A program made the translations under genes and the position numbers. Under the pieces are notes generated by a model that saw nothing but the letters and a program-made list of their open reading frames with translations, was not told where the DNA came from and searched no databases. A stretch of DNA of 64,000 nucleotides from sequence record PV231353.1. The stretch is one strand, 5' to 3'. This document shows, piece by piece, positions 21,185 to 58,077 of the stretch; within the stretch, counting starts at the first letter, position 1, and every line of letters starts with the position of its first letter.

Positions 21185-21211
21185 TAAGTCACGGACTGTA
21201 GGTTTCGTGAC
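21185..21211. promoter_or_regulatory. AAGTCAY-N14-RTGAY palindromic site (copy 1 of 6)
   Basis: GTCAC-14-GTGAC; other copies at 21494, 30000, 51941, 52081, 58012. Confidence 0.7.
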
Positions 21212-21251
21212 AAGGTAGAATATTCCACAGCAAATTCAAAGGCTTATAGCC

Positions 21252-21488
21252 ATGCTGATCCACCGTCTCTTCCACGATCTGACCGTCCGTATCGTCGTTT
21301 TGGGGTGGATTTATGCCAAAAAGCCCCGAAAAACCGCTCCAAAAGGGCATAATTTTCAGCCGAATCCGCCGGCCCAGGCCGTCCAGTGGTACGGCGACGT
21401 GGTGCGCTCGTTCCTCGAATCGCTTGAGGCGCTCAAGCCGGCGCTCACGAAACGCGGCTGGCGTCAAGCCATCTCGACCACCGCCTGA
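21252..21488 (+). CDS. hypothetical protein
   Basis: 78 aa, weak SD. Confidence 0.5.
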   Translation: MLIHRLFHDLTVRIVVLGWIYAKKPRKTAPKGHNFQPNPPAQAVQWYGDVVRSFLESLEALKPALTKRGWRQAISTTA

Positions 21489-21561
21489 CCTAAGTCATAG
21501 ACCGTGGGCTTCGTGACAGGATCACGCTTTCGTTACCGCTCCAGCCCTTGTGAGGCCTCGG

Positions 21562-21666
21562 ATGTTCGCCTTTCTCCGCCGGCTCAGCCTCGCCGCCGTC
21601 CATGGCGCGCTCTGGGCGATCCTGCTGGCGATGGTCGCCGTGGGCGGGCCGCGCCGCGCGCCCTAA
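21562..21666 (+). CDS. 34-aa hydrophobic peptide
   Basis: GAGG SD; MFAFLRRLSLAAVHGALWAILLAMVAVGGPRRAP. Confidence 0.5.
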   Translation: MFAFLRRLSLAAVHGALWAILLAMVAVGGPRRAP

Positions 21667-21718
21667 AGCGCCATATCTGACGCATAAGGCCCTCTAAGGC
21701 CTCATCTGTGAGACATTC

Positions 21719-21754
21719 AACGCCCTCGTGTTCCTCTGAACGCGGGGGCGTTTT
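21719..21754 (+). terminator. intrinsic terminator
   Basis: AACGCCCTCGTGTTC-CTCT-GAACGCGGGGGCGTT then TT. Confidence 0.6.
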
Positions 21755-21862
21755 GACGTCGGCGCGTTTTCGACTTGACGCGCGAGCGTTTTGACGCGGG
21801 CGCATTTTTGATCTCGACGGGCGAGCGTTTTGACGTCCGCGCATTTTTCAACTTGACGTCGT
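21748..21862. repeat. three 38-39-bp tandem repeats rich in TTGACG
   Basis: GCGTTTTGACG units at 21748, 21786, 21825. Confidence 0.85.
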
Positions 21863-21881
21863 TTCATTTACCGGGAGCGCC

Positions 21882-22132
21882 TTAGGGTTAACGCCGGCCG
21901 CCGAGCCCTGGGGCGATTTACCACCGCCACGTTAACCTAACGCCTGTTAACCTATCGGTTGTTAAGGTTAACGCCCCGTTAGGGTTAACGCCCCTTAACC
22001 CTGCCCGCGTTAAGGTTAACACCCCGTTAAGGTTAACGCCGGGCGCGCCCAGGCCCTACCGGGCCATACCGGGTATGACCGGCCCTACCCGGCCCTACCG
22101 GTTAGGGTTAACGCCCCGTTAGGGTTAACGCC
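21882..22132. repeat. GTTAAC / CtrA-site cluster with 17-bp unit GTTA(A/G)GGTTAACGCCCC
   Basis: Nine GTTAAC; TTAA-N7-TTAA at 22016; TTAA-N7-TTAG at 21968 and 22108. Confidence 0.85.
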
Positions 22133-22137
22133 CGGCG

Positions 22138-22244
22138 AGCGCCCAGCCCCGCCGTAGCGCCCCTACGGTTCGAAGAGCCCAGCCCAGCCGGGTCCCGCCC
22201 GGCGACCCCTACACCCTAGAGGCTATTTCTTAACAAGAGGTAAA
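22138..22244 (-). ncRNA. candidate sRNA 1 from a leftward CtrA-type promoter
   Basis: Minus-strand TTTA-N7-TTAA-N11-TAGGGT; 54-nt core shared with 24102-24155. Confidence 0.45.
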
Positions 22245-22273
22245 CGCGAAAAAGATTCTGCGGCGGCGCGGCG

Positions 22274-22352
22274 TTTACTTTTTGTTAAGACTTTGCGCCC
22301 ATAGTCCCCCTTGTCCCCGCCGCATCCCGCGCCGGGCAAGGAGCTTCCCGCC
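22274..22352 (+). promoter_or_regulatory. CtrA-box early promoter and hairpin leader (first of 12 forward copies)
   Basis: TTTA-N7-TTAA-N11-CATAGT; other boxes at 22563, 23659, 24236, 24697, 25275, 25868, 27062, 28217, 30181, 30770, 31243. Confidence 0.8.
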
Positions 22353-22538
22353 ATGATCCCCGACTCGATCATGAACCCCCGCGACCATTTCCACCGTCTG
22401 CGCGAGGAAACCGCCCGCGCTCTGGTCGAGGCCTTCGCCGAAACCGACCCCGGCGAGGATTACCGCGCCGAAGAGAAGGCCGGCGCTTGGGTTGTCGCCT
22501 ATTACGACGCGGCGGGCGAATTCGTCGCCTATCTCTAA
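22353..22538 (+). CDS. early hypothetical protein
   Basis: AAGGAG SD behind CtrA promoter. Confidence 0.75.
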   Translation: MIPDSIMNPRDHFHRLREETARALVEAFAETDPGEDYRAEEKAGAWVVAYYDAAGEFVAYL

Positions 22539-22637
22539 CCGCCTTCGCCCCCTGGCGCCGCGTTAACGGTTTGTTAACATGTTGGCGCCAGGGTCGCCCT
22601 AGCCCGGCGCGTCGCCGCGCCTTCGGAGAAAAACGCC

Positions 22638-23441
22638 ATGCTCTACACCCCCGCCGCCCGCCGCCTTCGCGGCTATCGCGAAACCGCCGCGAAGAACGCC
22701 GAAATTCACGCCCGCCCGCACATGGCCGACAACGTCGCCGGCTACAACGAGTCGGTGTGGCCGACGACGGCGCTAGGCGTCGCCGCCAAGGCCGGCGCCT
22801 TCAAGCGCCCCGAAACCGCTGGCAACTGGTCGGAAGATCGCAAAGCCTATTACGCCCCCGCGTGGCCGGCCGGCTGGCGCGTGCTAGGCACGGCGCAAGA
22901 GGTTTGCCACAAGGAAGGATCGCGCCGGGTCGACCATTCCGGATGGTACACGACGCCCGACGACTACAGCGCCACGCTTTCGGGCTATGTGCTGCAAATC
23001 CCCGCCCGCGACGGCCGCCCGCAATACGTCGCCGGGACCGCCCATAGTGAATGGGACGGGGTGACCCTCTATCCCGCCGACCGCTACGACAACCCGCTTG
23101 ACGCGGCGAGCGCCGCCGACCGTCACGCCGAACGCGACGCCGAAGAGGAACGCGAATATCAAACCGCGTGGCAAGCGGGCGTGCGCTACGCCGAACTCGG
23201 AGCCGAAGCCAAGGAGGCCCGCAAGGAAGCGCTGGCGATCCTCGCCGAACGCCGCAAGGTCAAGGGGCTGGAAACCCCCGCCTTGTGCGGCGCGATCCGG
23301 GCGCAGGTCGAGGCCCTGCTAAGCCGGATCGAAGAGGCGCGCGCCTCGCGCGCCAAGCTCAAGGAAGGCGAGGACTCGCGCCTCATGTTCTACCCGTCCG
23401 CCGCCATGGTCGCGGCCTTCAATGACGGCGCGGCGTCGTGA
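22638..23441 (+). CDS. early hypothetical protein
   Basis: GWY...GYVLQIP...Y.AG...AAD..AE..AEEEREY. Confidence 0.8.
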   Translation: MLYTPAARRLRGYRETAAKNAEIHARPHMADNVAGYNESVWPTTALGVAAKAGAFKRPETAGNWSEDRKAYYAPAWPAGWRVLGTAQEVCHKEGSRRVDHSGWYTTPDDYSATLSGYVLQIPARDGRPQYVAGTAHSEWDGVTLYPADRYDNPLDAASAADRHAERDAEEEREYQTAWQAGVRYAELGAEAKEARKEALAILAERRKVKGLETPALCGAIRAQVEALLSRIEEARASRAKLKEGEDSRLMFYPSAAMVAAFNDGAAS

Positions 23442-23628
23442 AGGTCGCCCGCGATAGCTTCGCCGTGTTCTGGACCCTCCCGCAAGGCGGGGTCAATTTC
23501 ATGCAGACATGAAACGGGCGCTCTACCCGACCGCCCGCGACGCCGCCCGCGCCTTCCGCGCCATGTTCCCCCGTGACCGGGTCAAGAGCGTCCGCGACGC
23601 GTCCGGGCGGTTTCTCGCCTTCCGCTAG
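23438..23628 (+). CDS. small early protein (apparent frameshift near 23500)
   Basis: VKVARDSFAVFW...NF joins (H)ADMKRALYPTAR...FR*. Confidence 0.5.
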
Positions 23629-23737
23629 GCCAGAGCGCCCCGGACCTTTTCCGGGGCGTTTACTCTTTGTTAAGACTTTGAGCCCATAGTCCCCTTGTCG
23701 CCGGGCAATCCCGCCCGGCGCTTTGTAGGATCGCCCC

Positions 23738-24031
23738 ATGTCGCACGTCTACGACATAGAATATACCGACACTTTCGCGGGGGAGGCTAATTATTCATGG
23801 ATTCGCCGCGCGGCCGTGACCATGCCGGAATTGACCCATTATGGGTACGATGGCGGGTCTAACTACGCCAAGGCTAACCGCGTATTTAACCGCGAACTCA
23901 TGAGGCGCGCCAAGGCCGCCATGGGCTTGACGGGGGTGCGCGGCGTCTCCGCCGCGCATGGCGACAATCTCGAATTTCGCCCGCACCGGTCCGCGACAAT
24001 CCTTTTTGTGACCTACCGCGACGCGGACTAG
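23738..24031 (+). CDS. early conserved phage protein
   Basis: YTDTFAGEANYSWIRR...EFRP. Confidence 0.8.
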   Translation: MSHVYDIEYTDTFAGEANYSWIRRAAVTMPELTHYGYDGGSNYAKANRVFNRELMRRAKAAMGLTGVRGVSAAHGDNLEFRPHRSATILFVTYRDAD

Positions 24032-24101
24032 GCCAGAGCCCGGCGCCGTCCCTTGGCGCCGGGCGTCACGCTTGCCGGACGCGTTAACCATGTTTTTGAA
24101 A

Positions 24102-24206
24102 AGCGCCCAGCCCCGCCGTAGCGCCCCTACGGTTCGAAGAGCCCGGCCCAGCCGGCTCCGCCGGCTACGGGATCAATCTAGCGCCAAAGTCTTAACAAGA
24201 GGTAAA
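24102..24206 (-). ncRNA. candidate sRNA 2 from a leftward CtrA-type promoter
   Basis: Minus-strand TTTA-N7-TTAA-N11-TAGATT; shared 54-nt core. Confidence 0.45.
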
Positions 24207-24315
24207 CGCCAGCGCCCGGCGATATCTTTTTCACGTTTACGTTTTGTTAAGACTTTGGCGGATAGTGTTCCCTTGCCGCCGGGCAATCCCGCCCCGCCGC
24301 TTGGAGCTTGCCGAC

Positions 24316-24699
24316 ATGGGGAAAACCCTGTTCCGCGAAATGGCCAAGGTCGCCGCCCCGGTGATCACCGCCTATCATGCCGACCTAGAAATTCATGACC
24401 GCAAGGTCATTGAAGGCCTGAAGGCCGGTGACGTCATCCTTTGGGCGCCCGACAAGGCCGGGACGACTCTTATCGTCCTGGCCCGCCAAGGCCGCCCCAA
24501 TCACCGCGCCGCCGAACACTTCGAGGCCGCCCAATGTCGCCAGCCCCCGGCGTGGTATCTGGCCAGCGTGTCGCACAATGGCGAGGCCGGGCAATGGCAA
24601 TTTGGCCCCGCCCCGGACGCCCCCGCCATCGTCGCCCGCTGGGCGGAGCAAGCCGCCCGCGATACCGCCCCGGACCCGGTGCGCGAGCTTCACCTGTAA
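24316..24699 (+). CDS. early hypothetical protein
   Basis: GGAG SD behind CtrA promoter. Confidence 0.75.
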   Translation: MGKTLFREMAKVAAPVITAYHADLEIHDRKVIEGLKAGDVILWAPDKAGTTLIVLARQGRPNHRAAEHFEAAQCRQPPAWYLASVSHNGEAGQWQFGPAPDAPAIVARWAEQAARDTAPDPVRELHL

Positions 24700-24759
24700 A
24701 CCTTTTGTTAAGGCCTCGCCGCTACGGTGGCGAGGTCAAACAACCAAGGAGCGCCGACC

Positions 24760-24957
24760 ATGGCCCCGCGAGGCGATACAGGCGAAGCCATGACCAAGGT
24801 CATAAGCCTAGACCTAGACAAGGCCACGGCCGAAGCCGTGAGCGAAGCGCTCGCCCATGTCTGGCGTGAAATATACGATCGCGAGCGCCGGGGCCAGGGC
24901 GGCAAGCTTCGCGCCGTGCTGGACAAGCTCAACACCGTTACCGACGCCCGCCGCTAA
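24760..24957 (+). CDS. early hypothetical protein
   Basis: AAGGAG SD. Confidence 0.65.
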   Translation: MAPRGDTGEAMTKVISLDLDKATAEAVSEALAHVWREIYDRERRGQGGKLRAVLDKLNTVTDARR

Positions 24958-24970
24958 AGGAGTCCAAGCC

Positions 24971-25243
24971 ATGCGCTACAACGTCAACGGGACCGGTTTT
25001 AAGGGCGGCTCCGCCCCGGCCGTCCCCGCCCAAGGCCTGACCGGTCACGCCGACGCCGCCGGCCTTTGGGTTCCCTCGCGCGAGCATATCGCCGCCATGC
25101 TCCCGCAACGCTGGCGCCACGCCTTCGCCCGCGCTTCGTTTTGGTATGACGCCCGCGACAACAAAAAGCCGTGCCGCGCCGACCTCTACGACTCGCGCGG
25201 CCGGTACCTGACTCAGGTCTGGGCGCATCCGGTTTTCAGCTAG
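24971..25243 (+). CDS. early hypothetical protein
   Basis: AAGGAG SD; FWYD...PCRADLY. Confidence 0.75.
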   Translation: MRYNVNGTGFKGGSAPAVPAQGLTGHADAAGLWVPSREHIAAMLPQRWRHAFARASFWYDARDNKKPCRADLYDSRGRYLTQVWAHPVFS

Positions 25244-25355
25244 GCCAGGACGCCCCGGAAAATCTTCCGGGGCGTTTACCTTTTGTTAACCTCTGGCCTC
25301 TAGGGTGACTTTCGCCGCCGGGCAATCCCGCCCGCCGCTTCGGAGTTTCGGCCCC

Positions 25356-25871
25356 ATGCCGCAATTCGTTCTTGATACCTCCGGCCAAGTCGCCCCGCCC
25401 GCTTCGGCCAAGCTTTGGCCGCATCCGCTGCGCTGGAATCAACTGAGCCCCTTCGCCCAAGGCTATATCGAGGCCCTGTTTTTCACTGAAAGCGCGCCGG
25501 GCGTGACCTCGCGCCAGTTCATGACCAAGGCCTATCAAAAGCGCCTCGAAAGCGGCGAGGCGGACGGCGCCTTGCCGGGCGACGTCGGCTTTTCCGACCT
25601 CGCGCCCGACACTCTCAACGCGATCTTGAACGATTGCGGGCGCTTCCAACGCGACAACGCCGACGCCCTGGCCAAGGCCTATGACCACGGGGGCGACTCG
25701 GGCGACTACGACGAGGCCGCCGCCGGCCGGGATTATTGGTACACCCGCAACGGCCATGGCGTCGGGTTTTGGGATCGCGGACTCGGCGAGATTGGCGAGG
25801 CCCTGGCCAGCGCCGCCCGCTACAGCGAACGTTACGCGACGTTTTACAACGGTAAAGTTCACCTCGATTAA
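25356..25871 (+). CDS. early conserved phage protein
   Basis: GYIEALFFT...DC..F...AGRDYWYTRNGHGVGFWDR. Confidence 0.8.
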   Translation: MPQFVLDTSGQVAPPASAKLWPHPLRWNQLSPFAQGYIEALFFTESAPGVTSRQFMTKAYQKRLESGEADGALPGDVGFSDLAPDTLNAILNDCGRFQRDNADALAKAYDHGGDSGDYDEAAAGRDYWYTRNGHGVGFWDRGLGEIGEALASAARYSERYATFYNGKVHLD

Positions 25872-25954
25872 GCTTTTGTTAAGACTTGTCCTCTAGGTTT
25901 GACTTCGCCGCCGGGCAATCCCGCCCGGCGGTCCTCTTCTCAGGATCGCCCCTT

Positions 25955-27006
25955 ATGACCTCTCATTCCATGGTTGCGCACCGTTGGGCGCAGGACGACG
26001 AGAACGGCCGCACCGCGCGCGGCTTCAACATGTATTTCGAGCGCTACGGGCGCGGCGCCGACCGCGTCAACGTGATTTTTCCTACGGGACTCACTTCCCG
26101 GCCGCCGCCTTCGTGACCGACGCGCACGGCCGCCGCGTGGTTCTCTACACGACGCACCGCCGGAGCATTTCGACCGCGAAACACCTTTCCCACATCCGCC
26201 ACGCGATTCCGTCGGGCGTGCCGGTGTTTTCCGTGCCGAACGTGTCGCGGATGCACAAGCCGGGCGGCGCGGGCGACTTCCACGGGGACAACCTGCGCGC
26301 CTATATCGAGAGCGCCGCCGGCCTCGCCGAAAAGGCCAAGCGCGCCCGCGTCAACGGCCCTTGGCTGCTTAGCCAAGCCCGCGACCAACTCGCCGAAGCC
26401 GCCCGTTACGCCGACGCCTTCAAGGTCAAGGGCTTCAAGGTTCCGGCCTTGGAAGACGTCGCCGGCCAATGGGCGAAGATGACGGCCGCCAAGGCGCGGG
26501 CCGAAGCCAAGGCCCGCAAGGAAGCCGAAAAGGCCGCCCGCGAACGCCGCGAAGCCGAACGGATCGCCGACGCCGAAGCCTTCGCCGCATGGATGCGCGG
26601 CGAGCGCCAGAGCGCCCCGTTTAGCTACCGGGTGCGCGATGACGGGACCGTCTATCTTCGCCGTTTCCGGGGCGTGGTCCGCGACCTGCGCAGCCAAGCG
26701 CGCGACGGCTCGCGCGTCGATGAGCTGCAAACCTCGCAAGGCGCGGCCGTGCCGTGGGAACACGCGGTCAAGGCCTTCCGGTTCATTAAGCTTTGCCGCG
26801 AACGCGGCGAGAGCTTCCACCGCAACGGCCGGGTGATCCGCGTTGGTCACTTCCAAGTTGACGCGATCGGCGCCAACGGGGACATGACGGCCGGGTGCCA
26901 CCGGTTCGCGTGGGATGAAATTGAACGCCTCGCCAGGGCCGAAGGGGTTTTCGACCTCCCCGCCGACGCCGGCGCCGTCGAAACCCGGCAAGCCGAACCG
27001 GCCTAA
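25955..27006 (+). CDS. early hypothetical protein (apparent frameshift in T-run near 26078)
   Basis: MTSHSMVAH.WA...IF joins SYGTHF...; C-terminal TSQGA.VP...GHFQVD.I..NGD..AGCH. Confidence 0.75.
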
Positions 27007-27141
27007 GCCCGCCCGACCCTCCAGCGCCCCGGCTCCCCGCCGGGGCGCTTTCGTGTACGCGGTAACCTTTTGTTAACTTCTGGCCTCTAGGGTGACTTTC
27101 GCCGCCGGGCAATCCCGCCCGCCGGCCAAGGATCGCAGACC

Positions 27142-27440
27142 ATGAATCTTTTCGTTGTCGCCATTGACCCCGCCCTCATCCCTTCGGCCGCCGGCTTCGT
27201 GGTCGCCTCCCCTACGGGTGCGGCAAGTGGCGCGCGTGCGTCGGGAGCGAGGCGGACATGATCGCGCTTCGCGACAAGATGCGCCGCGCGCACCCGGCCC
27301 CGGAAGGCTACAGCGTCCAGCCCCTGGCGTCGTTCCTGGCCTATCTCGAAACGGTCGGGGATAGCCCCTATGACCAGTTTCGCGCCCGCGACGCCGCCGC
27401 CCGCATCCTTGACACCCTGACAACGCACCTCGCCGCCTAG
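27142..27440 (+). CDS. early hypothetical protein (apparent frameshift in C-run near 27210)
   Basis: AAGGA SD; MNLFVVAID... joins YGCGKW...MIALRD. Confidence 0.6.
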
Positions 27441-27494
27441 TCCCGCCGCCCCCGGCCGCGCGCCGGGGCGCTTTCCTCGAAAGGATCGCCGACC

Positions 27495-27797
27495 ATGACA
27501 ACCCGTCTTATCGCCGTGCGCGGCCCGACCGCCGCCGAACTCGCCGACCCGTCCAGCCGCGCGGGCGGCGCCGAAGTCGTTTTCGAGCGCCGCGACCGCG
27601 AAGGCCACACGCGCCTTGTGTTCGCCGCGACCTGCTACGGGTCATATCAGCAATGGGGCGAAACCCGCGACGTGCTCGCCGACAACGTCGAGGCGGTCAC
27701 GCTCTGGGCCGAAGGCATGGCGGCCGTTGCCGCCCTCATCGACGAGAGCGACGACGACGAGGGCGACGACGCCCCGGCCGACGACGGGGAGGCGTGA
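27495..27797 (+). CDS. early hypothetical protein, acidic tail
   Basis: AAGGA SD. Confidence 0.75.
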   Translation: MTTRLIAVRGPTAAELADPSSRAGGAEVVFERRDREGHTRLVFAATCYGSYQQWGETRDVLADNVEAVTLWAEGMAAVAALIDESDDDEGDDAPADDGEA

Positions 27798-27800
27798 GCC

Positions 27801-28220
27801 ATGCGCACAACCAAGGCTCAACGCTTCGCCGCCATCGCCTTTGACGCCCTGGCCAAGGCCCTAAGCGAGCCGCGCCAAGCCGTCGCCCGCATGACCAAAT
27901 GGGAGGGGGCGGGCCATAGCTTCGCCAACCTGCAACGCGATTATGAGCGGTACGGCCCCGGCGCCCGCTCATGGTTTGGCCGGGCTGAAATGCGCTTCTT
28001 TGGGACGCGCCTTGAGGCCGCGCCGCTGGACTTCCCGGCGCTGGGCTGCACCCTGTTTCTGACCTCCGAAACCCCGCCCGGCGCCGGCCGGGTCTGGACC
28101 CTTCGCGCCTATGTCTGGGCTTCGGCCGATATCACTACGCTAACCCATGGCGACGAAACCGACGCGGCGACCGCGCAAGCGGCCTTTGACCTCTTATGGC
28201 GGGTCCTTTCCGGGCGGTAA
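27801..28220 (+). CDS. early hypothetical protein
   Basis: WF...EMRFFG.RL. Confidence 0.75.
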   Translation: MRTTKAQRFAAIAFDALAKALSEPRQAVARMTKWEGAGHSFANLQRDYERYGPGARSWFGRAEMRFFGTRLEAAPLDFPALGCTLFLTSETPPGAGRVWTLRAYVWASADITTLTHGDETDAATAQAAFDLLWRVLSGR

Positions 28221-28296
28221 CCTTTTGTTAACTTCTGCCCGCTAGGGTCTTCTTGCGGCCGGGCAATCCCGCCCGGCCGCCCAAGGATTGGATCGC

Positions 28297-28569
28297 ATGA
28301 CCCGCGCTCAAGCCCTCGCCCAAATGAACGCCCTTCCCGGTATCATCGCCTCCTTTGAGCGCGAGACGGGCGAATATCGCGTGACCCTGCGCTTTGGCCC
28401 GCTCCCCATGGGGCGCGGCGCCCAAGAGTGGATGCGCGCGCGCCGCGAAGCCGTCGCCAGCTACAGCGACGACAAGGCCGACGCCCTGGCCACCGCCCGC
28501 GACATGTCCGCCCGTTGGGAGGCGATGAGCGCCGAACAACGCGCCCGCCTCTATCACAACCCCGCCTAA
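28297..28569 (+). CDS. early hypothetical protein
   Basis: Behind CtrA promoter 28217. Confidence 0.75.
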   Translation: MTRAQALAQMNALPGIIASFERETGEYRVTLRFGPLPMGRGAQEWMRARREAVASYSDDKADALATARDMSARWEAMSAEQRARLYHNPA

Positions 28570-28636
28570 AGCCCCGCGCGCCGCCCTGGCCTTCGCCGGG
28601 GCGGCTCCCTTAAACCCCTCGCAAGGATCGCACCCC

Positions 28637-28930
28637 ATGACCGCCAAGTCCGCCCGCAAGCCCCTGACCAAGGAACAAAAGACCCGCCGCCGCGAAACCC
28701 GCCGCGCCGCCCGCCTCAACTGGTCGGATGAGCGCCGCGCCCGCGAATTCGAGCGTCAAGCCCGCTTCTTCCTGATGATCGCCACCCGCGCCCAAGGCGC
28801 CGGCCAAGGCCAGGAAGCCGCCCGCCTCGCCACGGTCGCACAACGCAAGGTGACCAACTGGCGCATGGCGCAGGCCTGCGCCCGGATTAACGCCCTGGCC
28901 GCGCATCCGTTCGCGGCCGTGGTCGCCTAA
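28637..28930 (+). CDS. basic early hypothetical protein
   Basis: AAGGA SD, Arg-rich. Confidence 0.7.
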   Translation: MTAKSARKPLTKEQKTRRRETRRAARLNWSDERRAREFERQARFFLMIATRAQGAGQGQEAARLATVAQRKVTNWRMAQACARINALAAHPFAAVVA

Positions 28931-28943
28931 GGAGGCCCCGCCC

Positions 28944-29126
28944 ATGACGCACCCTCACGCCCTGGCGCTGATCGCCCTCGCTGAAAAGGTGTTGCCGCTT
29001 ACCCGGCTGCACCCGCTCGACCAACGCGCCGCCGCCGTCGATCTAATCGGCGACCTCTACCGCCTCGCCGACGATATCGACGCGGCCCCGCAAGCCCCCG
29101 CCCTGGCGCAACCGAAGGCCGCCTAA
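28944..29126 (+). CDS. early hypothetical protein
   Basis: AAGGAGG SD. Confidence 0.7.
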   Translation: MTHPHALALIALAEKVLPLTRLHPLDQRAAAVDLIGDLYRLADDIDAAPQAPALAQPKAA

Positions 29127-29127
29127 C

Positions 29128-29433
29128 GTGACCGCCCTCCAACGCGCCGGTTTCGCTGCGCACCGTCGCGGCGTCAAATGGTGGAACAACCCGCATCGGG
29201 CCGGTTCCCCCGCCGCCTATCAATGGGACCAAGGCCACACCCTCGCCCGCCGCGACGCCGAACAAGCCGCGCTCGACGCCTTGGAGGCCGCCGACTTGGC
29301 CCCCGAACCGGGCGAGGTGATCACCGAAGCCTTGCGCCCCTATCTGGGCGCCGCCCTGGCCGAAAACCACGCCGACGACGTGCTAGACGCCCTCACGCGC
29401 GCCGGCTTCCAAATCACCCGCAAGGAGGCCTAA
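29128..29433 (+). CDS. early hypothetical protein
   Basis: GTG directly after upstream stop. Confidence 0.65.
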   Translation: MTALQRAGFAAHRRGVKWWNNPHRAGSPAAYQWDQGHTLARRDAEQAALDALEAADLAPEPGEVITEALRPYLGAALAENHADDVLDALTRAGFQITRKEA

Positions 29434-29438
29434 AGCCC

Positions 29439-29999: not shown

Positions 30000-30109
30000 G
30001 TCATCATTCCTACCGTCTATGACTTGTCACCGGCCGAAGTCTTACCCGGTGACAGTCTGGGCAAGTAAAGCTCACTCTGGATTTTATGACTTAGCGCAAA
30101 GGATTGAAT

Positions 30110-47689: not shown

Positions 47690-47693
47690 GCCG

Positions 47694-49585: not shown

Positions 49586-49591
49586 GACCCC

Positions 49592-49756
49592 ATGCAACAG
49601 CCTGAAACCATCACCGTCGACGTCCAGCCGGCCGAAGTCCCCGCCCCCAAGCCGCGCCCGCGCGCCAAGGTCCATGAGCCCCAGCGGTTCAACACCTTCA
49701 AGGCCGCCCTGTTCGGCACCACGTCCCTGATCCAGATCACCCGCTACGCCGGATGA
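49592..49756 (+). CDS. small hypothetical protein (54 aa)
   Basis: AGGA SD, coupled stop. Confidence 0.55.
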   Translation: MQQPETITVDVQPAEVPAPKPRPRAKVHEPQRFNTFKAALFGTTSLIQITRYAG

Positions 49757-50022: not shown

Positions 50023-50462
50023 TGCGCTACTACCTCGACACCGAGTTCAACGGCTTTGGCGGGGAACTGATCTCCCTGGCCCTGGTCCGCGAGGACGGCA
50101 ACTGGCTCTATCTGATCTACGAGACGACCCAGCCGATCGATTCCTGGGTCGCCGAGAACGTCATGCCGATCCTGCACCTGCCGGGCCTGCTGCCGATCCA
50201 CGTCAACCAGGAGGCCGGGGCCGAGTTCATCGCCCACTTCCTGGCCGGCGACGACGCCGTCGAGATCATCACCGACTGGCCCGACGACATCCGCTATTTC
50301 TGCCAGTCGATCATCTCCGGACCGGGCATGATGTCGCGCCTCGTCCCGAGCCTGAAGTTCTCGATGATCCGCGCCGACGCCTACCCGACCACCTTGCCGG
50401 GCGCGGTGCAGCACAATGCCGTCTGGGATGCGCGCGCCCTGCGCCACCTCATGCTGTCGTGA
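50022..50462 (+). CDS. DEDDh 3'-5' exonuclease (DnaQ/RNase T-like)
   Basis: YLDTEF...DW.DD..YF...HNA.WDARAL. Confidence 0.85.
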   Translation: MRYYLDTEFNGFGGELISLALVREDGNWLYLIYETTQPIDSWVAENVMPILHLPGLLPIHVNQEAGAEFIAHFLAGDDAVEIITDWPDDIRYFCQSIISGPGMMSRLVPSLKFSMIRADAYPTTLPGAVQHNAVWDARALRHLMLS

Positions 50463-50508
50463 GGCCCACGGCTCGGCGCCGGCGTAGAAGCCGGCGCGCA
50501 ACTTCCGG

Positions 50509-50990
50509 ATGATGGCGGCGACCTCGACCACGAGCGTCGCCACACACCGCACCTATCCCGGCAAGCTGATCTCGCCCGCCCCCGGCCACTGCCGCTGGTG
50601 TACTGGCCCCATCCTCAAGCCGGACGGCTCGATCAACCGCCGCAAGACCTTCTGCTCGCAGGTCTGCGTCTCCCACTACCTGCTGCGCGCCGATCCCGCC
50701 GAGATGCGCCGCCACGTCTTCTTCCGCGACCAGGGCGTCTGCGCTGCGTGTAAAAGAGATGGCTCTACCTTGACGATAGTGGATGGCAGGCCGACCACAT
50801 CGAGCCTCTCTTCCTGGCGTTCGGCGACCTCTCCTACTGGGAGCCGGAGAACGTCCAGGTCCTCTGCACCGACCCGTGCCACAAGCAAAAATCGGCCGAC
50901 GACATGCGCAAGTACGGCTTCGTGCTCAAGCTGACCCGCGAGCGCAAGCAGCCCGAAAAGCGGCGGCGGTTAGCCGAAAGACTATCTTGA
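50509..50990 (+). CDS. zinc-binding HNH endonuclease (apparent A-run frameshift near 50752)
   Basis: CRWC...CSQVC...CAAC...WQADHIEPL...N.Q.LC..CHKQKS. Confidence 0.75.
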
Positions 50991-51003
50991 GTCAAGCGCG
51001 ATC

Positions 51004-51043
51004 TGTCGTGAATCTTGACATTCGGCGAATTTTTTGCTAGGTT
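51004..51043 (+). promoter_or_regulatory. late-type promoter
   Basis: TGTCGTGAATCTTGACA-N17-TAGGTT. Confidence 0.7.
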
Positions 51044-51148
51044 CCCCAGCATCCCGATAGAGGTTGGCATATCCCGACGCCGCCAGCCGTCTCGCAACGC
51101 GACGGGTCGTCGCCCATACCACGGGGTCCGTGGGAAGAGAGAAACTGT

Positions 51149-51940
51149 ATGCCTGTTCTGTCCTACGATACGCTCGACATGGTCCCCGAGGGCCTGCGCG
51201 AGTTCGCAAAGCAAGTCGACGGCAGCGAGAAGTTCCAAGTGAACGTCGTCAGCGCCGCGAAGATCGACGAGTTTCGCGACAACAACATCAAGATTTCGAA
51301 GGAGCGCGACGCGCTCCTGGAGAAGGTGGCCCGGCTGGAGCCGATCGTCGGCGAAGACCCGGACGCCTTCAGCGCCAAGCTGACGGAACTGCAAGCGATC
51401 GCCCAGCGCGTCGCCGACGGTGACCTGAAGGAAGGCCGCGCCCTCGAAGAAGCGCTCCAGAAGCGCACCGAGGAGATGCGGAAGCAGTACGACGACCGTC
51501 TTCAGCAGACGGGCAAGGAACGGGCCGCGTGGCAGGCCAAGCACGATGAACTGGAGCGCCGGTTCAAGCAGTCGCTGGTCAGCAACGCGATCACCGCCGC
51601 CGCGATGGCGCAGGGCTCGGGCATCGACCCGACCGCGATCACCGAGGTGGTTCGCTCGGGCCTGGACGTGTTCAAGGCCGACGATCAGGGCCGTCTGACC
51701 CCCTATGTGGGCGACGCTCCGCTCTACGGCGCCGACGGTGTCACGCCGATGACGCCGAAGGAATGGCTGCAAAAGCTGAAGGAGGAGAAGCCGTTCTTCT
51801 TCCTCAACAGCAGCGGCGGCGGCGCCGGCGGCGACAAGACCAAGACGGTTCACGGCGTCACGCCGGAGCGTCTGAAGGGCATGTCGGCGGCCGAGCGTCT
51901 GGCCATCGCCAATGGCGAGAAGTCGGCGCGGCTGCGCTAA
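51149..51940 (+). CDS. capsid scaffolding protein
   Basis: Coiled-coil, W...L...KP.FF...SGGGAGG, directly upstream of MCP. Confidence 0.8.
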   Translation: MPVLSYDTLDMVPEGLREFAKQVDGSEKFQVNVVSAAKIDEFRDNNIKISKERDALLEKVARLEPIVGEDPDAFSAKLTELQAIAQRVADGDLKEGRALEEALQKRTEEMRKQYDDRLQQTGKERAAWQAKHDELERRFKQSLVSNAITAAAMAQGSGIDPTAITEVVRSGLDVFKADDQGRLTPYVGDAPLYGADGVTPMTPKEWLQKLKEEKPFFFLNSSGGGAGGDKTKTVHGVTPERLKGMSAAERLAIANGEKSARLR

Positions 51941-52204
51941 GTCACGAAACCCTGGTTTCGTGATCTGATCTAGGCCCCTCGGGGCGGAGTTGCCGGGCTC
52001 TCTTGCAAAAGCCCGGACCGATTTCGCCCGCACGGGCCAGAGCTTGAGCGCCGATCCTGGCGATCGCTCGAACAAGTCAAGTCATGAAACCCTGGTTTCG
52101 TGACAAGAGAATTCCCTCGGTGACGGCCGGTCGACCGAGGGGCAGACCGAGACGGGGTCCGTCTCTCAACCAGACCGGTGCGAACACCAAAGAGGAGCAA
52201 GCCA

Positions 52205-53140
52205 ATGGCTGCTGTGACCCTGCTGCAAGCGTCCGAAATGGCGCTCGGCAACGACGAAGTCAAGCGCGCCGCGATCATCGAGCTTTTCGCGACGCCCGAC
52301 ATCCTGCGCGTGATCCCGTTCCTGGACATCCAGGGCGGCGCGTACACCTACCTGCAAGAAGGCCAGCTCTCGGGCGTCGCCTTCCGGGGTATCAACGAGT
52401 CCTACGACACGTCGACCGGCGTGATCAACCCGCAAGTCGAGCGCCTGCGCATCGTCGGCGGCGACCTGGACGTCGACAAGTCCCTGCTGAAGACCCACGG
52501 CGCCAACGTGCGTTCGCAGCAGGAGCGCATGAAGGTCAAGGCCCTGAGCCTGTACCTCGCCGGCAAGATCATCAACGGCGACTCGGAAGCCGACCCCCGC
52601 GAGTTCGACGGTCTGCGCAAGCGCATCACCGGTTCGCAACTGTTCCCGGCCGGCGCGACCGCTGGCGGTGACGCCCTGTCGCTGGCCGTCCTGGACGAAG
52701 CCATCGACGCGGTCGACGGTGCGACCCACCTGATCATGTCGAAGCGCATGCGTAACCTGCTCGCGCAGTCGGCCAACAACCCCAACGTCACCGGCTACGT
52801 GTCGTGGGAAAAGGACGAGTTCGGCATGCGCGTGATGCGCTACGCTGACCTGCCGATCCTGGTCACCGACTACGACGACAAGAACCAGCAGGTCATCGAC
52901 TTCAACGAAGCCTGCCCTGGCGGCGGCTCGGCGGTCGGCACCTCGATCTACGTCGTCAACATCGGCGACGAAGGCGTGGTCGGCCTCCAGAACGGCGTCA
53001 TGGAGATCGAAGACCTCGGCGAGATCGACGCCAAGCCGGTTCTGCGCACCCGCGTCGAATGGCTGGTCTCGCTGGCCGTCCTGAGCGGTCGCTCCGCCGC
53101 TCGCGTCTGGGGCATCAAGAAGGCCGCCGTCACCCGCTAA
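52205..53140 (+). CDS. major capsid protein
   Basis: HK97-like pattern: IPF..I.G..Y.Y..E..L.GVAFR..NE...GGD..VD...FDGL; AGAGGAG SD. Confidence 0.9.
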   Translation: MAAVTLLQASEMALGNDEVKRAAIIELFATPDILRVIPFLDIQGGAYTYLQEGQLSGVAFRGINESYDTSTGVINPQVERLRIVGGDLDVDKSLLKTHGANVRSQQERMKVKALSLYLAGKIINGDSEADPREFDGLRKRITGSQLFPAGATAGGDALSLAVLDEAIDAVDGATHLIMSKRMRNLLAQSANNPNVTGYVSWEKDEFGMRVMRYADLPILVTDYDDKNQQVIDFNEACPGGGSAVGTSIYVVNIGDEGVVGLQNGVMEIEDLGEIDAKPVLRTRVEWLVSLAVLSGRSAARVWGIKKAAVTR

Positions 53141-53215
53141 GGGTGATGGCTCAGGGGCTCCGGCCCCCTGACCTTCCTGGTCCTCTCCACCCCCATCTAA
53201 GCAGGAAATCCCCAG

Positions 53216-53662
53216 ATGGAATCCAAGATTCGTCACCAGTACGACGCGCTCCTGGCGCTTCAGCCGGTCGGCACCGCTGCGGTGACCGCCGACGGCTCGT
53301 CCGTCAACGCGGTGGACATCTACCGCATCGCCAACGGTCGCGGCGACGTCGCCGGCCGCTACGGCATCGGTTCGTTCGACATCGTGTTCTACTTCAAGTC
53401 GGCCGTCACCGGCGGCGCGACCCCGGAGACCTACACGATCAACGTCGTGACCACCGACGCCGACGGCGCCAACCCCGTGGTGCAGGAGACCTTCACGGTC
53501 GAAAGCACCATGATCGGCGACCCCTACGTCCTGGCCTTCCACCCGGCCACGCTGAAGCTGAAGGACGCCGACGCCGCCAAGGTGAAGCTGACCATCGACG
53601 TGGCCGGCACCGCGCCGTCGCTCGACTTCTACGCCTTCGTGGCCCCGCACTCGCACCAGTAA
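53216..53662 (+). CDS. minor capsid / decoration protein (probable)
   Basis: Beta-rich 148 aa directly after MCP, followed by a terminator. Confidence 0.65.
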   Translation: MESKIRHQYDALLALQPVGTAAVTADGSSVNAVDIYRIANGRGDVAGRYGIGSFDIVFYFKSAVTGGATPETYTINVVTTDADGANPVVQETFTVESTMIGDPYVLAFHPATLKLKDADAAKVKLTIDVAGTAPSLDFYAFVAPHSHQ

Positions 53663-53700
53663 TGGGCGAGCCGGGTTCCCGGCGTTCGGTCAAAGTCAAC

Positions 53701-53727
53701 CCCCGGACCCTGGTCCGGGGTTTTCTT
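53701..53727 (+). terminator. intrinsic terminator
   Basis: CCCCGGAC-CCTG-GTCCGGGG-TTTTCTT. Confidence 0.8.
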
Positions 53728-53746
53728 TGGGTGCTGCGGCCCAGAA

Positions 53747-53764
53747 ATGTCGTGAATCTTGACA
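53747..53764 (+). promoter_or_regulatory. late-type promoter motif
   Basis: ATGTCGTGAATCTTGACA. Confidence 0.7.
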
Positions 53765-53851
53765 CAAGGGCCGTTTCATGCCAGAAGTCAAGTCTCTTTT
53801 GAGCGCGGCGTTGAAGGGCCGTGCCGGTCTCCCCGAAACGGAAAATCCCCC

Positions 53852-54235
53852 ATGAGCAACAAGAACCTCGTGCCCGTCTACTCGCCGGAAGGCAAGAAGG
53901 AACTGCACACCCGCCTGAACGCCTACGACCTCGTCAATGGCGCGGGCTGGACCTGGAAGCCGGGTGTCGAGACCACGCCGGCCGCGATCCCGCCCTACCG
54001 CGCTCCGCCCGTCGGCGCTGAGCCGGCCCAAGCCGTGCTGGACCGCGCCGGTCACCGCAACGACCGCACCCTGACCGAGGTGGTTGGCGCCGATGACGCC
54101 GACGCTGATCTGGACGCCGCCGAGGACGAAGTCGTCGAGGACGCCGCCGACGAGGCTCCGGTCGCCGAAGAAGCCCCCGCCGCTCCTGCCGCCCCGGCGG
54201 CGCGCGGTCGCGGCCGCAAGCCCACGGCGGCCTAA
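53852..54235 (+). CDS. virion-region hypothetical protein
   Basis: ATG 53852; acidic/Ala-rich tail ending RGRGRKP. Confidence 0.75.
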   Translation: MSNKNLVPVYSPEGKKELHTRLNAYDLVNGAGWTWKPGVETTPAAIPPYRAPPVGAEPAQAVLDRAGHRNDRTLTEVVGADDADADLDAAEDEVVEDAADEAPVAEEAPAAPAAPAARGRGRKPTAA

Positions 54236-54238
54236 GCC

Positions 54239-54520
54239 ATGGTGGAACTCGGCTACTTCAGCAAGACCTGGGTGGTGGACGTCACTGCTGCCTCCGACGT
54301 CTTCGCCAATCCCGGCAACGGGCAGACCTTCATGCTGCGCGCCGACCGCAAGATTCACATCGCGCGGTCGGTGGACAACAACGCCGAGGCCACCACGGGC
54401 GACTGCCTCCTCCTGGCCGACGAGCCCGCCAGCTTCGCTATGGAAGTCGGCGGCTCGATTGCCTTCATCCTGGCCGACGGCGAGACCGACGGCAAAATCT
54501 TCATCACCCAGGTGAACTAA
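54239..54520 (+). CDS. virion-region hypothetical protein
   Basis: Beta-rich 93 aa. Confidence 0.75.
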   Translation: MVELGYFSKTWVVDVTAASDVFANPGNGQTFMLRADRKIHIARSVDNNAEATTGDCLLLADEPASFAMEVGGSIAFILADGETDGKIFITQVN

Positions 54521-54523
54521 GCC

Positions 54524-54916
54524 GTGGCGAACCAGTCCTACAAGCTGCACGACGTGATCATCGCCTACGTCAAGGCCAGCAACCCGGAACTCGGGCTGCT
54601 GACCGCCGCGCCGAACCCGGACGGCACTGGCGTGGTCGAGCCCAACAGCGTCTACGGCTACGGACGTCAGCCCATCACGTTCGGCACGACCGTGCGCATG
54701 ACCGGCGTCGACGCCGGCAAGTCCTCGATCTCCAACACCGTGCCGATCGTCTTCGGCCCGACCGTCACCGACGGCTGGCCGACGGTCACCCACTGGGGCG
54801 TGTTCGACGAGAACGGCGACCTGCTCGATTATGGCCCGCTGCCGGCGACCCGCACCCTGCCGGTCGGCGACTCGATCTCGTTCGGCGTGGGGGCGGTGCA
54901 ACTCCGCTACGCCTAA
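54524..54916 (+). CDS. tail/fibre-associated protein
   Basis: Y.RQ.ITF...SNT..I.F...W.TVTH..VFD..G.LL..G.L...GD...F. Confidence 0.75.
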   Translation: MANQSYKLHDVIIAYVKASNPELGLLTAAPNPDGTGVVEPNSVYGYGRQPITFGTTVRMTGVDAGKSSISNTVPIVFGPTVTDGWPTVTHWGVFDENGDLLDYGPLPATRTLPVGDSISFGVGAVQLRYA

Positions 54917-54919
54917 GCC

Positions 54920-56860
54920 ATGGCCCGCGTCTGGACCGCACGCGCTGGCGCCCTGGTCCGCTCCGAAGCGGTCCTGGTCTCCAATCTCCAGCAGGCGACC
55001 GAGTTCGTCGGCGAGATCGCGTTCGACGCCACCCTCAAGCCCTATTCGGGGCAGTCCTCCACCATCGTCGCCGAGTTCGGCCTCGATGGCGACTCGGTCT
55101 GGTGGCCGGGCTATCCGGTCGCGTTCGATCCGCCGTTCCTGATCATCGGCGAGTTCGGGCTGAGCCTGTCGAAGGGCGCCTCGTCGATCTTCCCGTTCGA
55201 GTTCGACCGGGGCATCGACGACAAGACCTCCCTGGTCCAGGCCCTGAACGACGCCGGCTACACGGGCGGCGGGGCGGCACGCCCTTCGATGACAGCTTCG
55301 ACATCGTCCTGAGCGACGGCGACGAGGATGTCTCGCAAGGCGCACTGGACCTCACCGGCCTGTCGGTCGGCGAGTCGATCGTCAATCTCGACGTCCTGCT
55401 CGGCAAGCTGATCCCGCCGATGCCGCCGGCCTTCCCGAACGGCACCCTGTCGATCAGCAACACCGCCGGCAACGACCCGCGACTGGCGAGCGGCTTCACC
55501 GACAACATCGGCTCGGGCCTGACGGCGGGGACCTCGGTAACCCGCATCACCGCCGCCGGCGTCTCGACCTTCGCCTTCAACGACGTCGGTCCGGGCAATG
55601 ACGGCGTCCTCCAGGCCCTGCTCAATGGCGCGGTCGCCGCCACCCGCACCCTGACCGGCGCCGACGAGGGCAACTATTCGGGTCTGGTGATCGCCGACCA
55701 GAAGGACTACCCGACCGACCGGCCGGGCTTCTGGAAGTCGATGGACGTCAGCCTCAACCTCCTGGCGGTCCCGGTCGGGGTCGACAAGATCAGGCTGAAC
55801 CATACGGCGGCGGGCCAGACCAACGAGGTAGTGTTCATCCGCGACACCCTGACGGCGGTCCCTACGGTGAGCGCCGGCAGCGTCGTCCAGGAAAACGCCG
55901 GCACCCTGGCCTATTCGTCGGGTGTGCCGCACTACGGCACCGGCGCGACCCTGACGGTGGGCCTGTCGTTCAACAACCTCGCGGGGAGACCTATTACGGC
56001 GGCACGGACCCGGTGACGATCTCCGGCTCCAACTCGATCATGTCGAACAAGACGCTGAGCTACGGCGCGATCGGGTTCACCACGCCGTTTGCGCGCAACA
56101 CCACCGCCGCCCAGGCGATCACCCCCAGTCGGTCGCCATCGACGGCACCAACGTCCACACCTCGGGCGTGATCCAGGGCACGGCGCGCAACGTCAACGGG
56201 GCCTCGGCCACGGCGACCCTGTCGTCGACGGTGATCCTGGTCAAGCGAGGCACGGCGACCGGCAAGCTCGACGAGCTTTCGATCCCGGTCACGGGCATGG
56301 GCTCCACCCCCAACGGCCTCAACGCCATCCGGGTGGGCCTGGGCGCGGGCGACACCCCGGCCGGCACGCCTCAGTCCTGGGATCAGACGGCGGCGCTCGC
56401 CTCGCATGAAGCGGCGGTCGTCGCCGGCATCATGGGGCACAACCAGAACAACTACGCCACCGGCTACCTCCCGGTGGGTCCCAACCTCTCGGTGGGCCGC
56501 ACCGGGGCGCAGTACGTCACCCTGTCGTTCAAGCGCGCCTCGCGTTCGACGTTCCGGATCGCCATCACCGGGTCCTACGCGGGCTGCTGGATCAAGCTGC
56601 CGGGCGTCTCGGACGTCCAGCCCAACGCCCCGAACGGCTGGTGGAACGGCTTCCAGGCCTATGACGGCGCCGGCATCCCCGGCGAGGCCGGCGACCCGAA
56701 CGCCGGCTGCGCGCTCGGCGCGGTCATGACCGGAGCCTCCGGGACGTTTCAGATGACCTTCGGTACGGAGTCCTCGACCAACGCGACCAACAACGAAATC
56801 CTGGTCCGCTTGAAGTTCAACGCGGGCCAGAGCCTCACGGCTCTGTCGTTCACGAGCTAA
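54920..56860 (+). CDS. virion structural protein (three apparent frameshifts near 55270, 55985, 56125)
   Basis: ORFs 54920-55312, 55102-56016 and 56168-56860 join into one beta-rich protein. Confidence 0.7.
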
Positions 56861-56869
56861 GGGGCGGCC

Positions 56870-57568
56870 ATGGCGATCAACAGCACTGAACTCGTCGACC
56901 GGCTGATCAAGCTGGTCGCCTTCGAGGTCACCAAGACCGGCAAGGCCTCCGACAAGACCGGCTCCAACGAGTCGATCCCCTCGCCGACCGTGGTGTTCCC
57001 CGAGAACATCTGGAACGAGAAGGCGCTGCTGCCGGCGACGCCGCCGACGGCCGACACCGCCCAGGTCAAGGTCTATTCAGGCGCCACCCGCATCCGGGCG
57101 ACCGCCGATCCGACCGCCCAGCCCAACGAAACGTGGCTGGCGACTTCGACCTACGGGACGCCGTCGACGCGGCTGACCAACTTCATCGCTCCCTCGGTGG
57201 GCGGCTCGGGCTACGCGGCCCGCGTCTTCATCGGGGACCCCAACACTGGCCCGGCGGCCCGTATCTTCCCCGACACCACGGGCGAGGAATGGACCTTCGA
57301 CTATATCGCCGGCGTCCTCAACTTCCCGACCGCCGTGCCGGGCTCCAAGACCGCCACGATCGGCACGGGGTCCGTCAGCATCGCGGCCAACGGCATCTAT
57401 CTCGAACTCTACCGCTACATCGGGGCCACCGGCGGCGGCGGAGGCGGGGTCGACCCCGGCAGTCTCGGCACCATGGCCTACCAGGACGCCGACGCAGTCG
57501 ACATCACCGGAGGCGACATCAGCAACGTCGTCTTCACCAACGTCACCATCGACGGTGGAACCTTCTAA
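56870..57568 (+). CDS. virion structural protein
   Basis: W.FDY.AGVL.F...YRY.G; C-terminal LGTMA.Q.A..V.ITGG.I fibre-type motif. Confidence 0.75.
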   Translation: MAINSTELVDRLIKLVAFEVTKTGKASDKTGSNESIPSPTVVFPENIWNEKALLPATPPTADTAQVKVYSGATRIRATADPTAQPNETWLATSTYGTPSTRLTNFIAPSVGGSGYAARVFIGDPNTGPAARIFPDTTGEEWTFDYIAGVLNFPTAVPGSKTATIGTGSVSIAANGIYLELYRYIGATGGGGGGVDPGSLGTMAYQDADAVDITGGDISNVVFTNVTIDGGTF

Positions 57569-57587
57569 CCCCCAGGAGCCCTGAACC

Positions 57588-58004
57588 ATGGCCTCTCTCG
57601 TCTATAACTCCATGCTGCACGATCTGGTCAACGGCGACATCGCCTTTGACACCGACACCTTCAAGGTGATGCTGGTGACCTCGGCCTACACGCCGAACAA
57701 GGACACCCACACCCGCAAGAACCAAGTCACCAACGAGGTGACGGGCGCGGGCTACACCGCTGGCGGACAGAACTCGGCCGTGACCATCACGCCCGACACC
57801 GCCAACGACCGCGAGGACCTGTCCTTCGCCACGGTCACCTGGACCAGCGCCACCATCACCGCCCGCGCGGCCGTGATCTACAAGGACACCGGCACGGCCG
57901 CGACCTCGCCGCTGATCGCCTATGTCGACTTCGGCACGGACGTGTCGTCGACCAACGCGAACTTCGCCGTGTCGTTCTCGTCGCCGCTGCGCTTCCAGAA
58001 CTAA
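57588..58004 (+). CDS. tail-associated structural protein
   Basis: DTDTFKVML...Y...GY..GG...TWT..TITAR.AVIY...LIAY.DFG. Confidence 0.8.
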   Translation: MASLVYNSMLHDLVNGDIAFDTDTFKVMLVTSAYTPNKDTHTRKNQVTNEVTGAGYTAGGQNSAVTITPDTANDREDLSFATVTWTSATITARAAVIYKDTGTAATSPLIAYVDFGTDVSSTNANFAVSFSSPLRFQN

Positions 58005-58077
58005 GCCCTAAGTCACGATCCTCTGAGATCGTGACTTAGTCCGCCTCCTCGTCTCCGCCGCCTCAAGGGTCTTCGCG

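Follow-up and report, generated by a model that had tools for sequence, protein, structure and literature searches.

GTCACG-box stem-loops at gene junctions of phiCbK-like Caulobacter phages: candidate intercistronic mRNA elements

What does a short palindrome do that recurs between the genes of a large Caulobacter phage, with its two halves seemingly always the same distance apart? The question is raised by a 64-kb stretch of Caulobacter phage RBC57 (bases 62001-126000 of PV231353.1, 208,414 bp), hereafter the window; positions are those of the window unless given as record positions, which refer to the full PV231353.1. RBC57 is a phiCbK-like siphophage whose capsid region is 96-98% identical to those of phiCbK and CcrSwift. 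A preliminary description of the window had noted six copies of the pentamers GTCAY and RTGAY at 21188, 21494, 30000, 51941, 52081 and 58012, each with 14 nt between the half-sites (N14), and had taken a spacing that is fixed regardless of pairing to favour a dimeric DNA-binding protein over an RNA hairpin. Here we compare RBC57 with nine further genomes (phiCbK, CcrRogue, CcrBL10, Bajun, CcrColossus, CcrPW, CcrBL9, Gurke and Domovoi), in which orthologous junctions were found via the flanking proteins. The comparison leads us to favour, by somewhat better than even chances, transcribed stem-loops with a role between cistrons, as elements of mRNA stability or processing, in the phiCbK-like phages (subfamily Dolichocephalovirinae).

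The six sites are indeed present, each with exactly 14 nt between its pentamers, and their number is far above expectation, as the pattern GTCAY-N14-RTGAY gave 11 strand-matches in the window, corresponding to these six sites, against 0.52 expected from dinucleotide-preserving shuffles, and none of 100 shuffles reached 11. A histogram of all spacers from N0 to N40 across the whole RBC57 genome, the check proposed at the outset, likewise singled out N14 with 11 matches, the other spacers giving 0-8 (mean ~2.6), and a sharp N14 peak was also found in phiCbK, Rogue and BL10. Nine of the 11 whole-genome matches are intergenic, namely the six window sites and those at record 138782, 140652 and 175116, and the remaining two (record 43.4-43.8 kb) are coding and due to chance. 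These sequence comparisons support the view that the sites form one sequence family under selection. The spacing itself, however, is not invariant: N15 and N18 members exist in RBC57 and N15, N16 and N27 members in its relatives, and the apparent constancy arose because the search pattern had fixed N14. The orthologously validated members have spacings of N14, N15, N16, N18 and N27. For instance, N15 is found at record 136718, at Colossus 48760 and in every structural-module member of Gurke and Domovoi, as well as in the Colossus and PW orthologue of site 58012, which has a 5-nt loop. Orthologues of site 52081 are N15, N16 or N27, and two metagenomic relatives carry N16 and N27 versions before the capsid gene, the N27 version consisting of two nested boxes.

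An alignment of 27 distinct members, drawn from eight of the ten phage genomes, accounts for this variation. A full member has a lower stem of 6 bp in which (A)GUCACG pairs with CGUGAC(U). This box helix (GTCACG/CGTGAC in DNA) is 97.5% paired, changes on both sides of a pair were never seen in it, and its foot is invariant across at least four phage genera. The inner helix, comprising the four pairs above the box, is 90.7% paired with double changes at all four, and the outer helix, formed by pairs outside the box, also shows double changes at four of four pairs. The covariation score of 0.392 compares with 0.145 in shuffles (0/500 as high), and slid-alignment controls were only 25-41% paired. 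The inner extension measures 3-5 bp and the outer one, present in some genera, 2-5 bp, both of free sequence as long as they pair; the loop of 3-12 nt is also free in sequence. Within the phiCbK group, the inner arm reads GAAAC/GTTTC, GATTC/GAATC or GATCC/GGATC depending on the site, and in Colossus, PW, Gurke and Domovoi its two sides are swapped (GTTTC/GAAAC). N14 is the plain outcome of a 10-bp stem closed by a 4-nt loop.

These properties do not support the step from fixed spacing to a dimeric protein, since the spacer covaries as a helix and the spacing tracks the length of loop and stem. A lean towards the sense strand points the same way: among mismatches outside the loop-closing pair, ~9 independent G.U pairs on the sense strand face two A.C pairs (one-sided P = 0.03), and the sense fold is more stable than the antisense fold at 21188 (dG -10.3 versus -7.3 kcal/mol), at 51941 and at 52081 (-12.8 versus -8.5). 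Computed stabilities range from -10 to -17 kcal/mol at 21188, 51941, 52081 and 58012. That the foot stays invariant while both adjoining helices drift argues, in addition, for a partner that reads its sequence. The suggestion of a second phage regulon may hence hold in the broad sense that the invariant 6-bp foot suggests a common sequence-reading partner, but for the hairpin class it is not supported as a set of dimeric double-stranded DNA operators.

The position of the members relative to genes follows equally distinct rules. Five of the six window sites were said to follow a stop codon, and they do so at distances of 19, 5, 0, 0 and 7 nt (21188, 21494, 30000, 51941 and 58012, respectively). 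Among the nine intergenic N14 sites, five begin 0-7 nt past a stop codon against 0.8 expected (Poisson-binomial P = 3e-4), and three of these five lie in spacers 150-266 nt long. A gap of exactly 7 nt recurs in several genera behind both the gp073-like gene (site 58012) and the major tail gene, and the intervening sequence differs. The companion claim, that five sites precede a gene by 40-100 nt, holds in part: four do so, at 32-100 nt (21188, 21494, 52081 and 58012), and 30000 and 51941 lie ~240 nt upstream of the next gene. Taken over the whole family, the stem-loops are on the sense strand and occupy three kinds of position: 0-7 nt past the stops of the scaffold, gp073-like, major tail protein, PhoH-like and small early genes; at the extreme 5' end of a late transcript, that of the head-tail adaptor operon; and in the 5' leaders of the major capsid and major tail genes. 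In RBC57, phiCbK, Rogue and BL10, the first base of the 5'-end member (record 136718) lies 7 nt past the -10 element (GATAAT) of a late promoter and so coincides with the predicted +1; its Colossus counterpart begins ~5-6 nt downstream of the predicted start. Most members lie within operons, such as the one that runs from the promoter at record 115754 to the fibre gene. A scan for hairpins followed by a T-run found no T-run after the stem at any of the six sites; the same scan flagged canonical terminators at 53701, 23633, 25248 and 30728, and operon ends carry such canonical terminators. Furthermore, in Bajun and CcrBL9 the scaffold, gp073-like and major tail genes are followed by GC-rich hairpins unrelated to the family, which suggests that these junctions need a hairpin, of which the GTCACG type is one version; this substitution, like the G.U lean, is at odds with the preference for a protein over a hairpin.

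How might such hairpins work? Intercistronic stabiliser hairpins, as in the puf operon and the REP elements of malEF, and 5'-terminal stem-loops are known to protect mRNA, and from these precedents we infer that the phage hairpins serve as boundaries within the mRNA. In this role they would stop exonucleases that proceed 3'-to-5', cap 5' ends or mark points of processing, and adjoining cistrons of long operons could thereby reach different steady-state levels; the ratios tuned in this way may include those of scaffold to capsid, tail tube to chaperone, and upstream gene to fibre. The invariant box would be read by a putative protein, either a nuclease or an RNA-binding factor. Judging from known ribosome footprints, when a ribosome sits on the stop codon the 7-nt gap might bring the hairpin to its mRNA entrance. 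More tentatively, one could regard the box as the address label of a phage-specific post-transcriptional regulon, in which a dedicated protein docks at stop-proximal and 5'-end hairpins and thus couples translation termination to the fate of the mRNA segment; the asymmetric N14 sites of the early region would then use the same word a second time, at the level of DNA. Work on the Caulobacter model has phiCbK as its standard phage, and the expression of the phage genes is known only as time classes. If hairpins of this kind do shape mRNA levels, the unequal output of scaffold, capsid, tail tube and fibre from long late operons would be explained by ~10 conserved stem-loops placed where the most abundant structural genes meet, and the invariant box would offer a handle for finding a new RNA-processing or RNA-binding factor. 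For annotation, we suggest that the elements be called terminators or operators only once transcript ends have been mapped.

The comparison with known systems helps to delimit what is unusual here. The closest likeness is to the mRNA-stabilising stem-loops of the Rhodobacter capsulatus puf operon and the Escherichia coli malE-malF REP, which resemble the phage hairpins in lacking a U-tract, in standing directly 3' of an abundant cistron (here scaffold and major tail protein) and in their location inside a polycistronic operon, with, for puf, an alphaproteobacterial host. Such hairpins are expected to shield the upstream segment from 3' exonucleases and so to give unequal mRNA levels. The phage elements differ from them in their 6-bp box, invariant over several genera, in the stop-codon gap of 0-7 nt and in having members at 5' ends and in leaders. 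With intrinsic terminators they share a GC-containing hairpin just past a stop codon, but they have no U-tract, are mostly intra-operonic and conserve a foot sequence that terminators do not need. They also recall the T7 RNase III sites and the T4-type PeSL cassettes, in that a large virulent phage carries ~10 related stem-loops where differently expressed genes adjoin, and the hairpin followed by an early promoter at 30026 resembles the PeSL arrangement; unlike these, however, they are syntenic rather than shuffled and share no sequence similarity with them. RNase III sites are typically ~20 bp long, whereas the stems here have 10-15 bp, and an RNase III gene was found in the host control genome and in none of the phages. 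Dimeric helix-turn-helix operators, finally, are similar in having inverted pentamers, a preferred spacing within one genome and ~10 copies per genome, and dissimilar in that the phage spacer is base-paired, the spacing varies between orthologues and the sites do not overlie promoters. A search of Rfam gave no family match in the window, and no earlier description of GTCACG-box hairpins was found in the literature. Thus, the kind of element, an intercistronic stem-loop, would be a known one, and what appears to be new is the conserved sequence box together with the coupling to stop codons. Earlier work on these phages predicted terminators by TransTermHP only and described no such motif (Gill et al. 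2012), and it treated phiCbK expression as time classes only (McLaughlin et al. 2023).

Several observations weigh against an mRNA role, above all at the sites of the early region. The sites at 21188, 21494 and 30000 are unlike other members in that they pair weakly and are asymmetric, with the outer 8-9 nt on each side conserved and the centre variable. Those at 21494 and 30000, together with record 138782 and 175116, fold at dG -4 to -5.4 kcal/mol, as shuffled sequences do, yet keep both pentamers. The early-region counterparts are N14 in ten of ten genomes, including Gurke and Domovoi with their N15 hairpin class. They form two clusters, the first lying 0.9-1.7 kb downstream of the gene for the large terminase (TerL) in all ten genomes and the second a further 7-21 kb beyond it in opposite orientation; accordingly, the spacers of the second cluster match those of the first at 9-10 of 14 positions in reverse and at ~3 of 14 in forward orientation (phiCbK group, Bajun and Gurke). 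Such inversion on the two sides of the early region, seen in at least five genera, is not predicted by an RNA model, and neither is the constancy of N14. As for the hairpin class, the G.U bias is modest and would equally fit a hairpin in the non-template DNA strand, and the sequence-specific reading of an A-form helix is unusual. No candidate for the partner emerged; the expected profile (present with box hairpins, absent in Bajun and CcrBL9) fits six open reading frames, five of which were scanned and have no known function. The available phage RNA-seq consists of assembled Logan contigs from one study, in which a single 28-kb contig runs across the region and gives no readable ends or levels, and phage reads were absent from the raw runs X14, X17 and X20.

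The early sites are also what sustains the idea that the family consists of double-stranded DNA sites for a dimeric phage or host protein reading GTCAY and RTGAY 14 bp apart, as an operator, a roadblock, a looping site or a nucleoid-organising site. The sharp N14 peak in RBC57, phiCbK, Rogue and BL10 fits this idea, as do the poorly pairing early sites that retain pentamers and N14 in all ten genomes, their asymmetry, conserved outer blocks, variable centre and inverted arrangement, and their persistence although the small genes that flank them are without detectable homologues across genera; the hexamer TCGTGA, common to the sites and the late promoter box, could be added. Against it, the spacer of the hairpin class covaries as a helix, unrelated hairpins substitute at the same junctions, and shifts of 1-13 bp in the spacing of orthologues would rotate the half-sites out of phase. 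Moreover, no recognisable promoter lies at or near the sites other than record 136718 (at +1) and 138782 (~45 nt downstream of one), the promoter likeness is absent in Colossus-like and Gurke-like phages that keep the box, and no cognate protein was identified. We therefore judge a dimer of this kind to be quite improbable for the family; it holds even that place because of the early-region subset, and for the hairpin class it is not supported. Weak pairing, N14 in every genus and asymmetry together mean that the early sites may be recognised at the level of DNA, 21494 and 30000 above all and 21188 in part. Somewhat less doubtful, though still unlikely in our estimate, is that the hairpins are factor-dependent or leaky terminators, i.e. 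attenuators at which RNA polymerase is stopped or paused without a U-tract, perhaps with the help of a box-reading factor of phage or host, such that transcription of distal genes (fibre, tail chaperone and tape measure, small genes after TerL) is lowered. Hairpins directly past stop codons are suggestive of this, and site 58012 is annotated in CcrSwift as a "predicted rho-independent terminator" (TransTermHP), the sole member annotated elsewhere; at the orthologous gp073-like junction, Gurke and Bajun have T-rich-tailed hairpins that by eye read as canonical terminators, and the early promoter after 30000/30026 gives the usual order of terminator and promoter. Yet a T-run is present at no site, most sites lie in operons in which no late promoter box (GANTCTTGAC) intervenes before the essential structural genes distal to them, other members are found at a predicted +1 and in 5' leaders, positions that make little sense for a terminator, and the phage has canonical terminators at its operon ends. 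A role of the palindromes in DNA itself, as REP-like, recombination or mobile elements (single-stranded DNA hairpins, crossover sites or linkers for module exchange), strikes us as very improbable. The sites are extragenic, past stop codons and equipped with a conserved foot, the early ones are inverted repeats around a gene-variable segment, and the inner AAACC-NN-GGTTT recalls hix/gix crossover sites. A tyrosine recombinase has been reported in these phages (Gill et al. 2012), but neither a serine recombinase nor a Y1/RAYT transposase was found in them, the copy number is low (~10), positions are syntenic across genera rather than scattered, and genomes of Caulobacter and Brevundimonas do not carry the consensus hairpin as a repeat. 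Recombination between sites is also unlikely as their central regions differ, and early and structural genes lie on the same strand in the genomes examined, giving no sign of inversion, for which no systematic test was made.

Further candidate identities were tried and rejected. Sites of the hix/gix type were set aside as no PF00239 match exceeded the cut-off in five phage genomes, and REP/RAYT elements as PF01797 gave no match in five phage genomes and the foot reads (A)GTCACG and not GTAG/CGTC; a GTAG or CGTC foot tag marks RAYT-associated REP palindromes (Di Nocera et al. 2013, PMC3733652). The phiCbK-type consensus hairpin, searched in 185,579 species genomes as a possible host repeat, gave seven scattered matches in unrelated bacteria, about as many as by chance, and none in Caulobacter or Brevundimonas. 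A sigma-70-type promoter, with CTAAGTC as -10 or GTGACA as -35, lacks a consistent -35 or -10 partner, and a stimulator of stop-codon read-through or frameshifting is contradicted by the reading frames after the scaffold, gp073-like and tail genes, which close within 10-17 codons. A factor shared with the late promoter box through TCGTGA was rejected as a general link. The resemblance that the preliminary description had pointed out between the right half-site and the late promoter is real in RBC57, whose promoter box GTCGTGAATCTTGACA contains the hexamer, but it does not extend to Colossus-like and Gurke-like phages: the comparison covered one late promoter, that upstream of the major tail gene, and there the hexamer is missing from Colossus, Gurke and CcrBL9. 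The sharing thus looks coincidental, because the Colossus-like and Gurke-like phages keep the hairpin box without TCGTGA at that promoter.

The individual members, all on the plus strand in the window, illustrate this range. In the hairpin class, the site at 51941..51964 abuts the TAA of the head scaffolding gene and forms a 10-bp stem with a 4-nt loop (dG -12.5), and that at 52081..52104 precedes the major capsid gene by 100 nt. The latter is the first helix of a conserved structured capsid leader (52081-52204), in which further pairs covary. The member at 58008..58039, with its box at 58012-58035 and a stem extended by CTAA/TTAG, is the most stable of these (dG -16.6) and lies 7 nt past the TAA of the gp073-like gene; the distance to the giant tail-fibre gene is 42 nt. 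Outside the window, the N14 member at record 140652 is a near-perfect hairpin within the group of dG -12.5 to -16.6, and the N15 member at record 136718 overlaps the stop of the PhoH-like gene and has orthologues in Colossus and Gurke that are perfect box hairpins. The N14 sites at record 138782 and 175116 both fold weakly; the former, in the 5' leader of the major tail gene, lies ~45 nt downstream of a late promoter, occurs only in the phiCbK and Rogue groups and has a right arm, GGTGAC, that is likely to be a ribosome-binding site as well.

Among the early-region sites, 21188..21211 is moderately stable, with an 8-bp stem that includes one G.U pair and an 8-nt loop; it begins 19 nt past a TAG and 40 nt before the next gene, and it is kept in phiCbK, Rogue and BL10. 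The site at 21494..21517, asymmetric and weakly paired (dG -5.4), lies 5 nt past a TGA and 32 nt before the next gene, with its outer 9 nt and 8 nt conserved and its central 6-7 nt variable. That at 30000..30023 directly adjoins the upstream gene's TAA, yields a stable hairpin on neither strand, and has a spacer identical to that of 21494 at 9 of 14 positions as the reverse complement and at 3 of 14 in forward orientation. Only 2 nt beyond it, at 30026..30053, stands the N18 member (GTCAC...GTGAC; 9-bp stem, 12-nt loop, dG -12.2), which the N14 pattern missed and which is followed by an early promoter; its Rogue counterpart has the full GTCACG/CGTGAC box, also with N18. Together, the two clusters (21188-21517 and 30000-30053) bracket the early-gene region of the terminal repeat. 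As a separate observation, the right arm of the site at 21494 can alternatively pair with a downstream TCACG (CGTGA-N5-TCACG), after which CTTTCGTT follows, so that 21512-21526 would make a small, terminator-like alternative structure.

Some neighbouring features deserve mention in their own right. The scaffold-capsid spacer (264 nt, 51941-52204) is conserved across genera. Behind the site at 52081 it contains the helices CCCTCGG...CCGAGGG and GAGACGGGG/CCGTCTC, the second with a compensatory GC-to-AU change, as well as long-range pairs, and by its sequence 52081-52204 resembles a structured leader of the capsid mRNA. About 20 copies of the late/middle promoter box, (T)GTCGTGAATCTTGACA, are present in the genome, including those at 51005-51020 and 53749-53764; upstream of several of these stands an inverted repeat of the box (TCACGAC-N7-GTCGTGA), an arrangement that would give a 7-8-bp hairpin in overlap with the box. 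The word AAGTCAAGTC is found both where transcription from the late promoter at 53754 is predicted to start and immediately before the site at 52081 (53693-53730 and 53785-53796; 52074-52084), and the hexamer AAGTCA is ~8-fold enriched in intergenic DNA. In Colossus, a repeat of ~30 nt, CCG-GTCACGAGG...GAGTGAT-GGGA, with N17, is present in four copies (record 210822, 223307, 255536 and 271574) and is positionally unrelated to the hairpin family. Finally, two minus-strand matches to the motif with two mismatches, at 25286-25311 and 27073-27098, mark near-identical early promoter regions, TTAAC...CTCTAGGGTGACTT, each of which is followed by a leader hairpin with an AATCCC loop.

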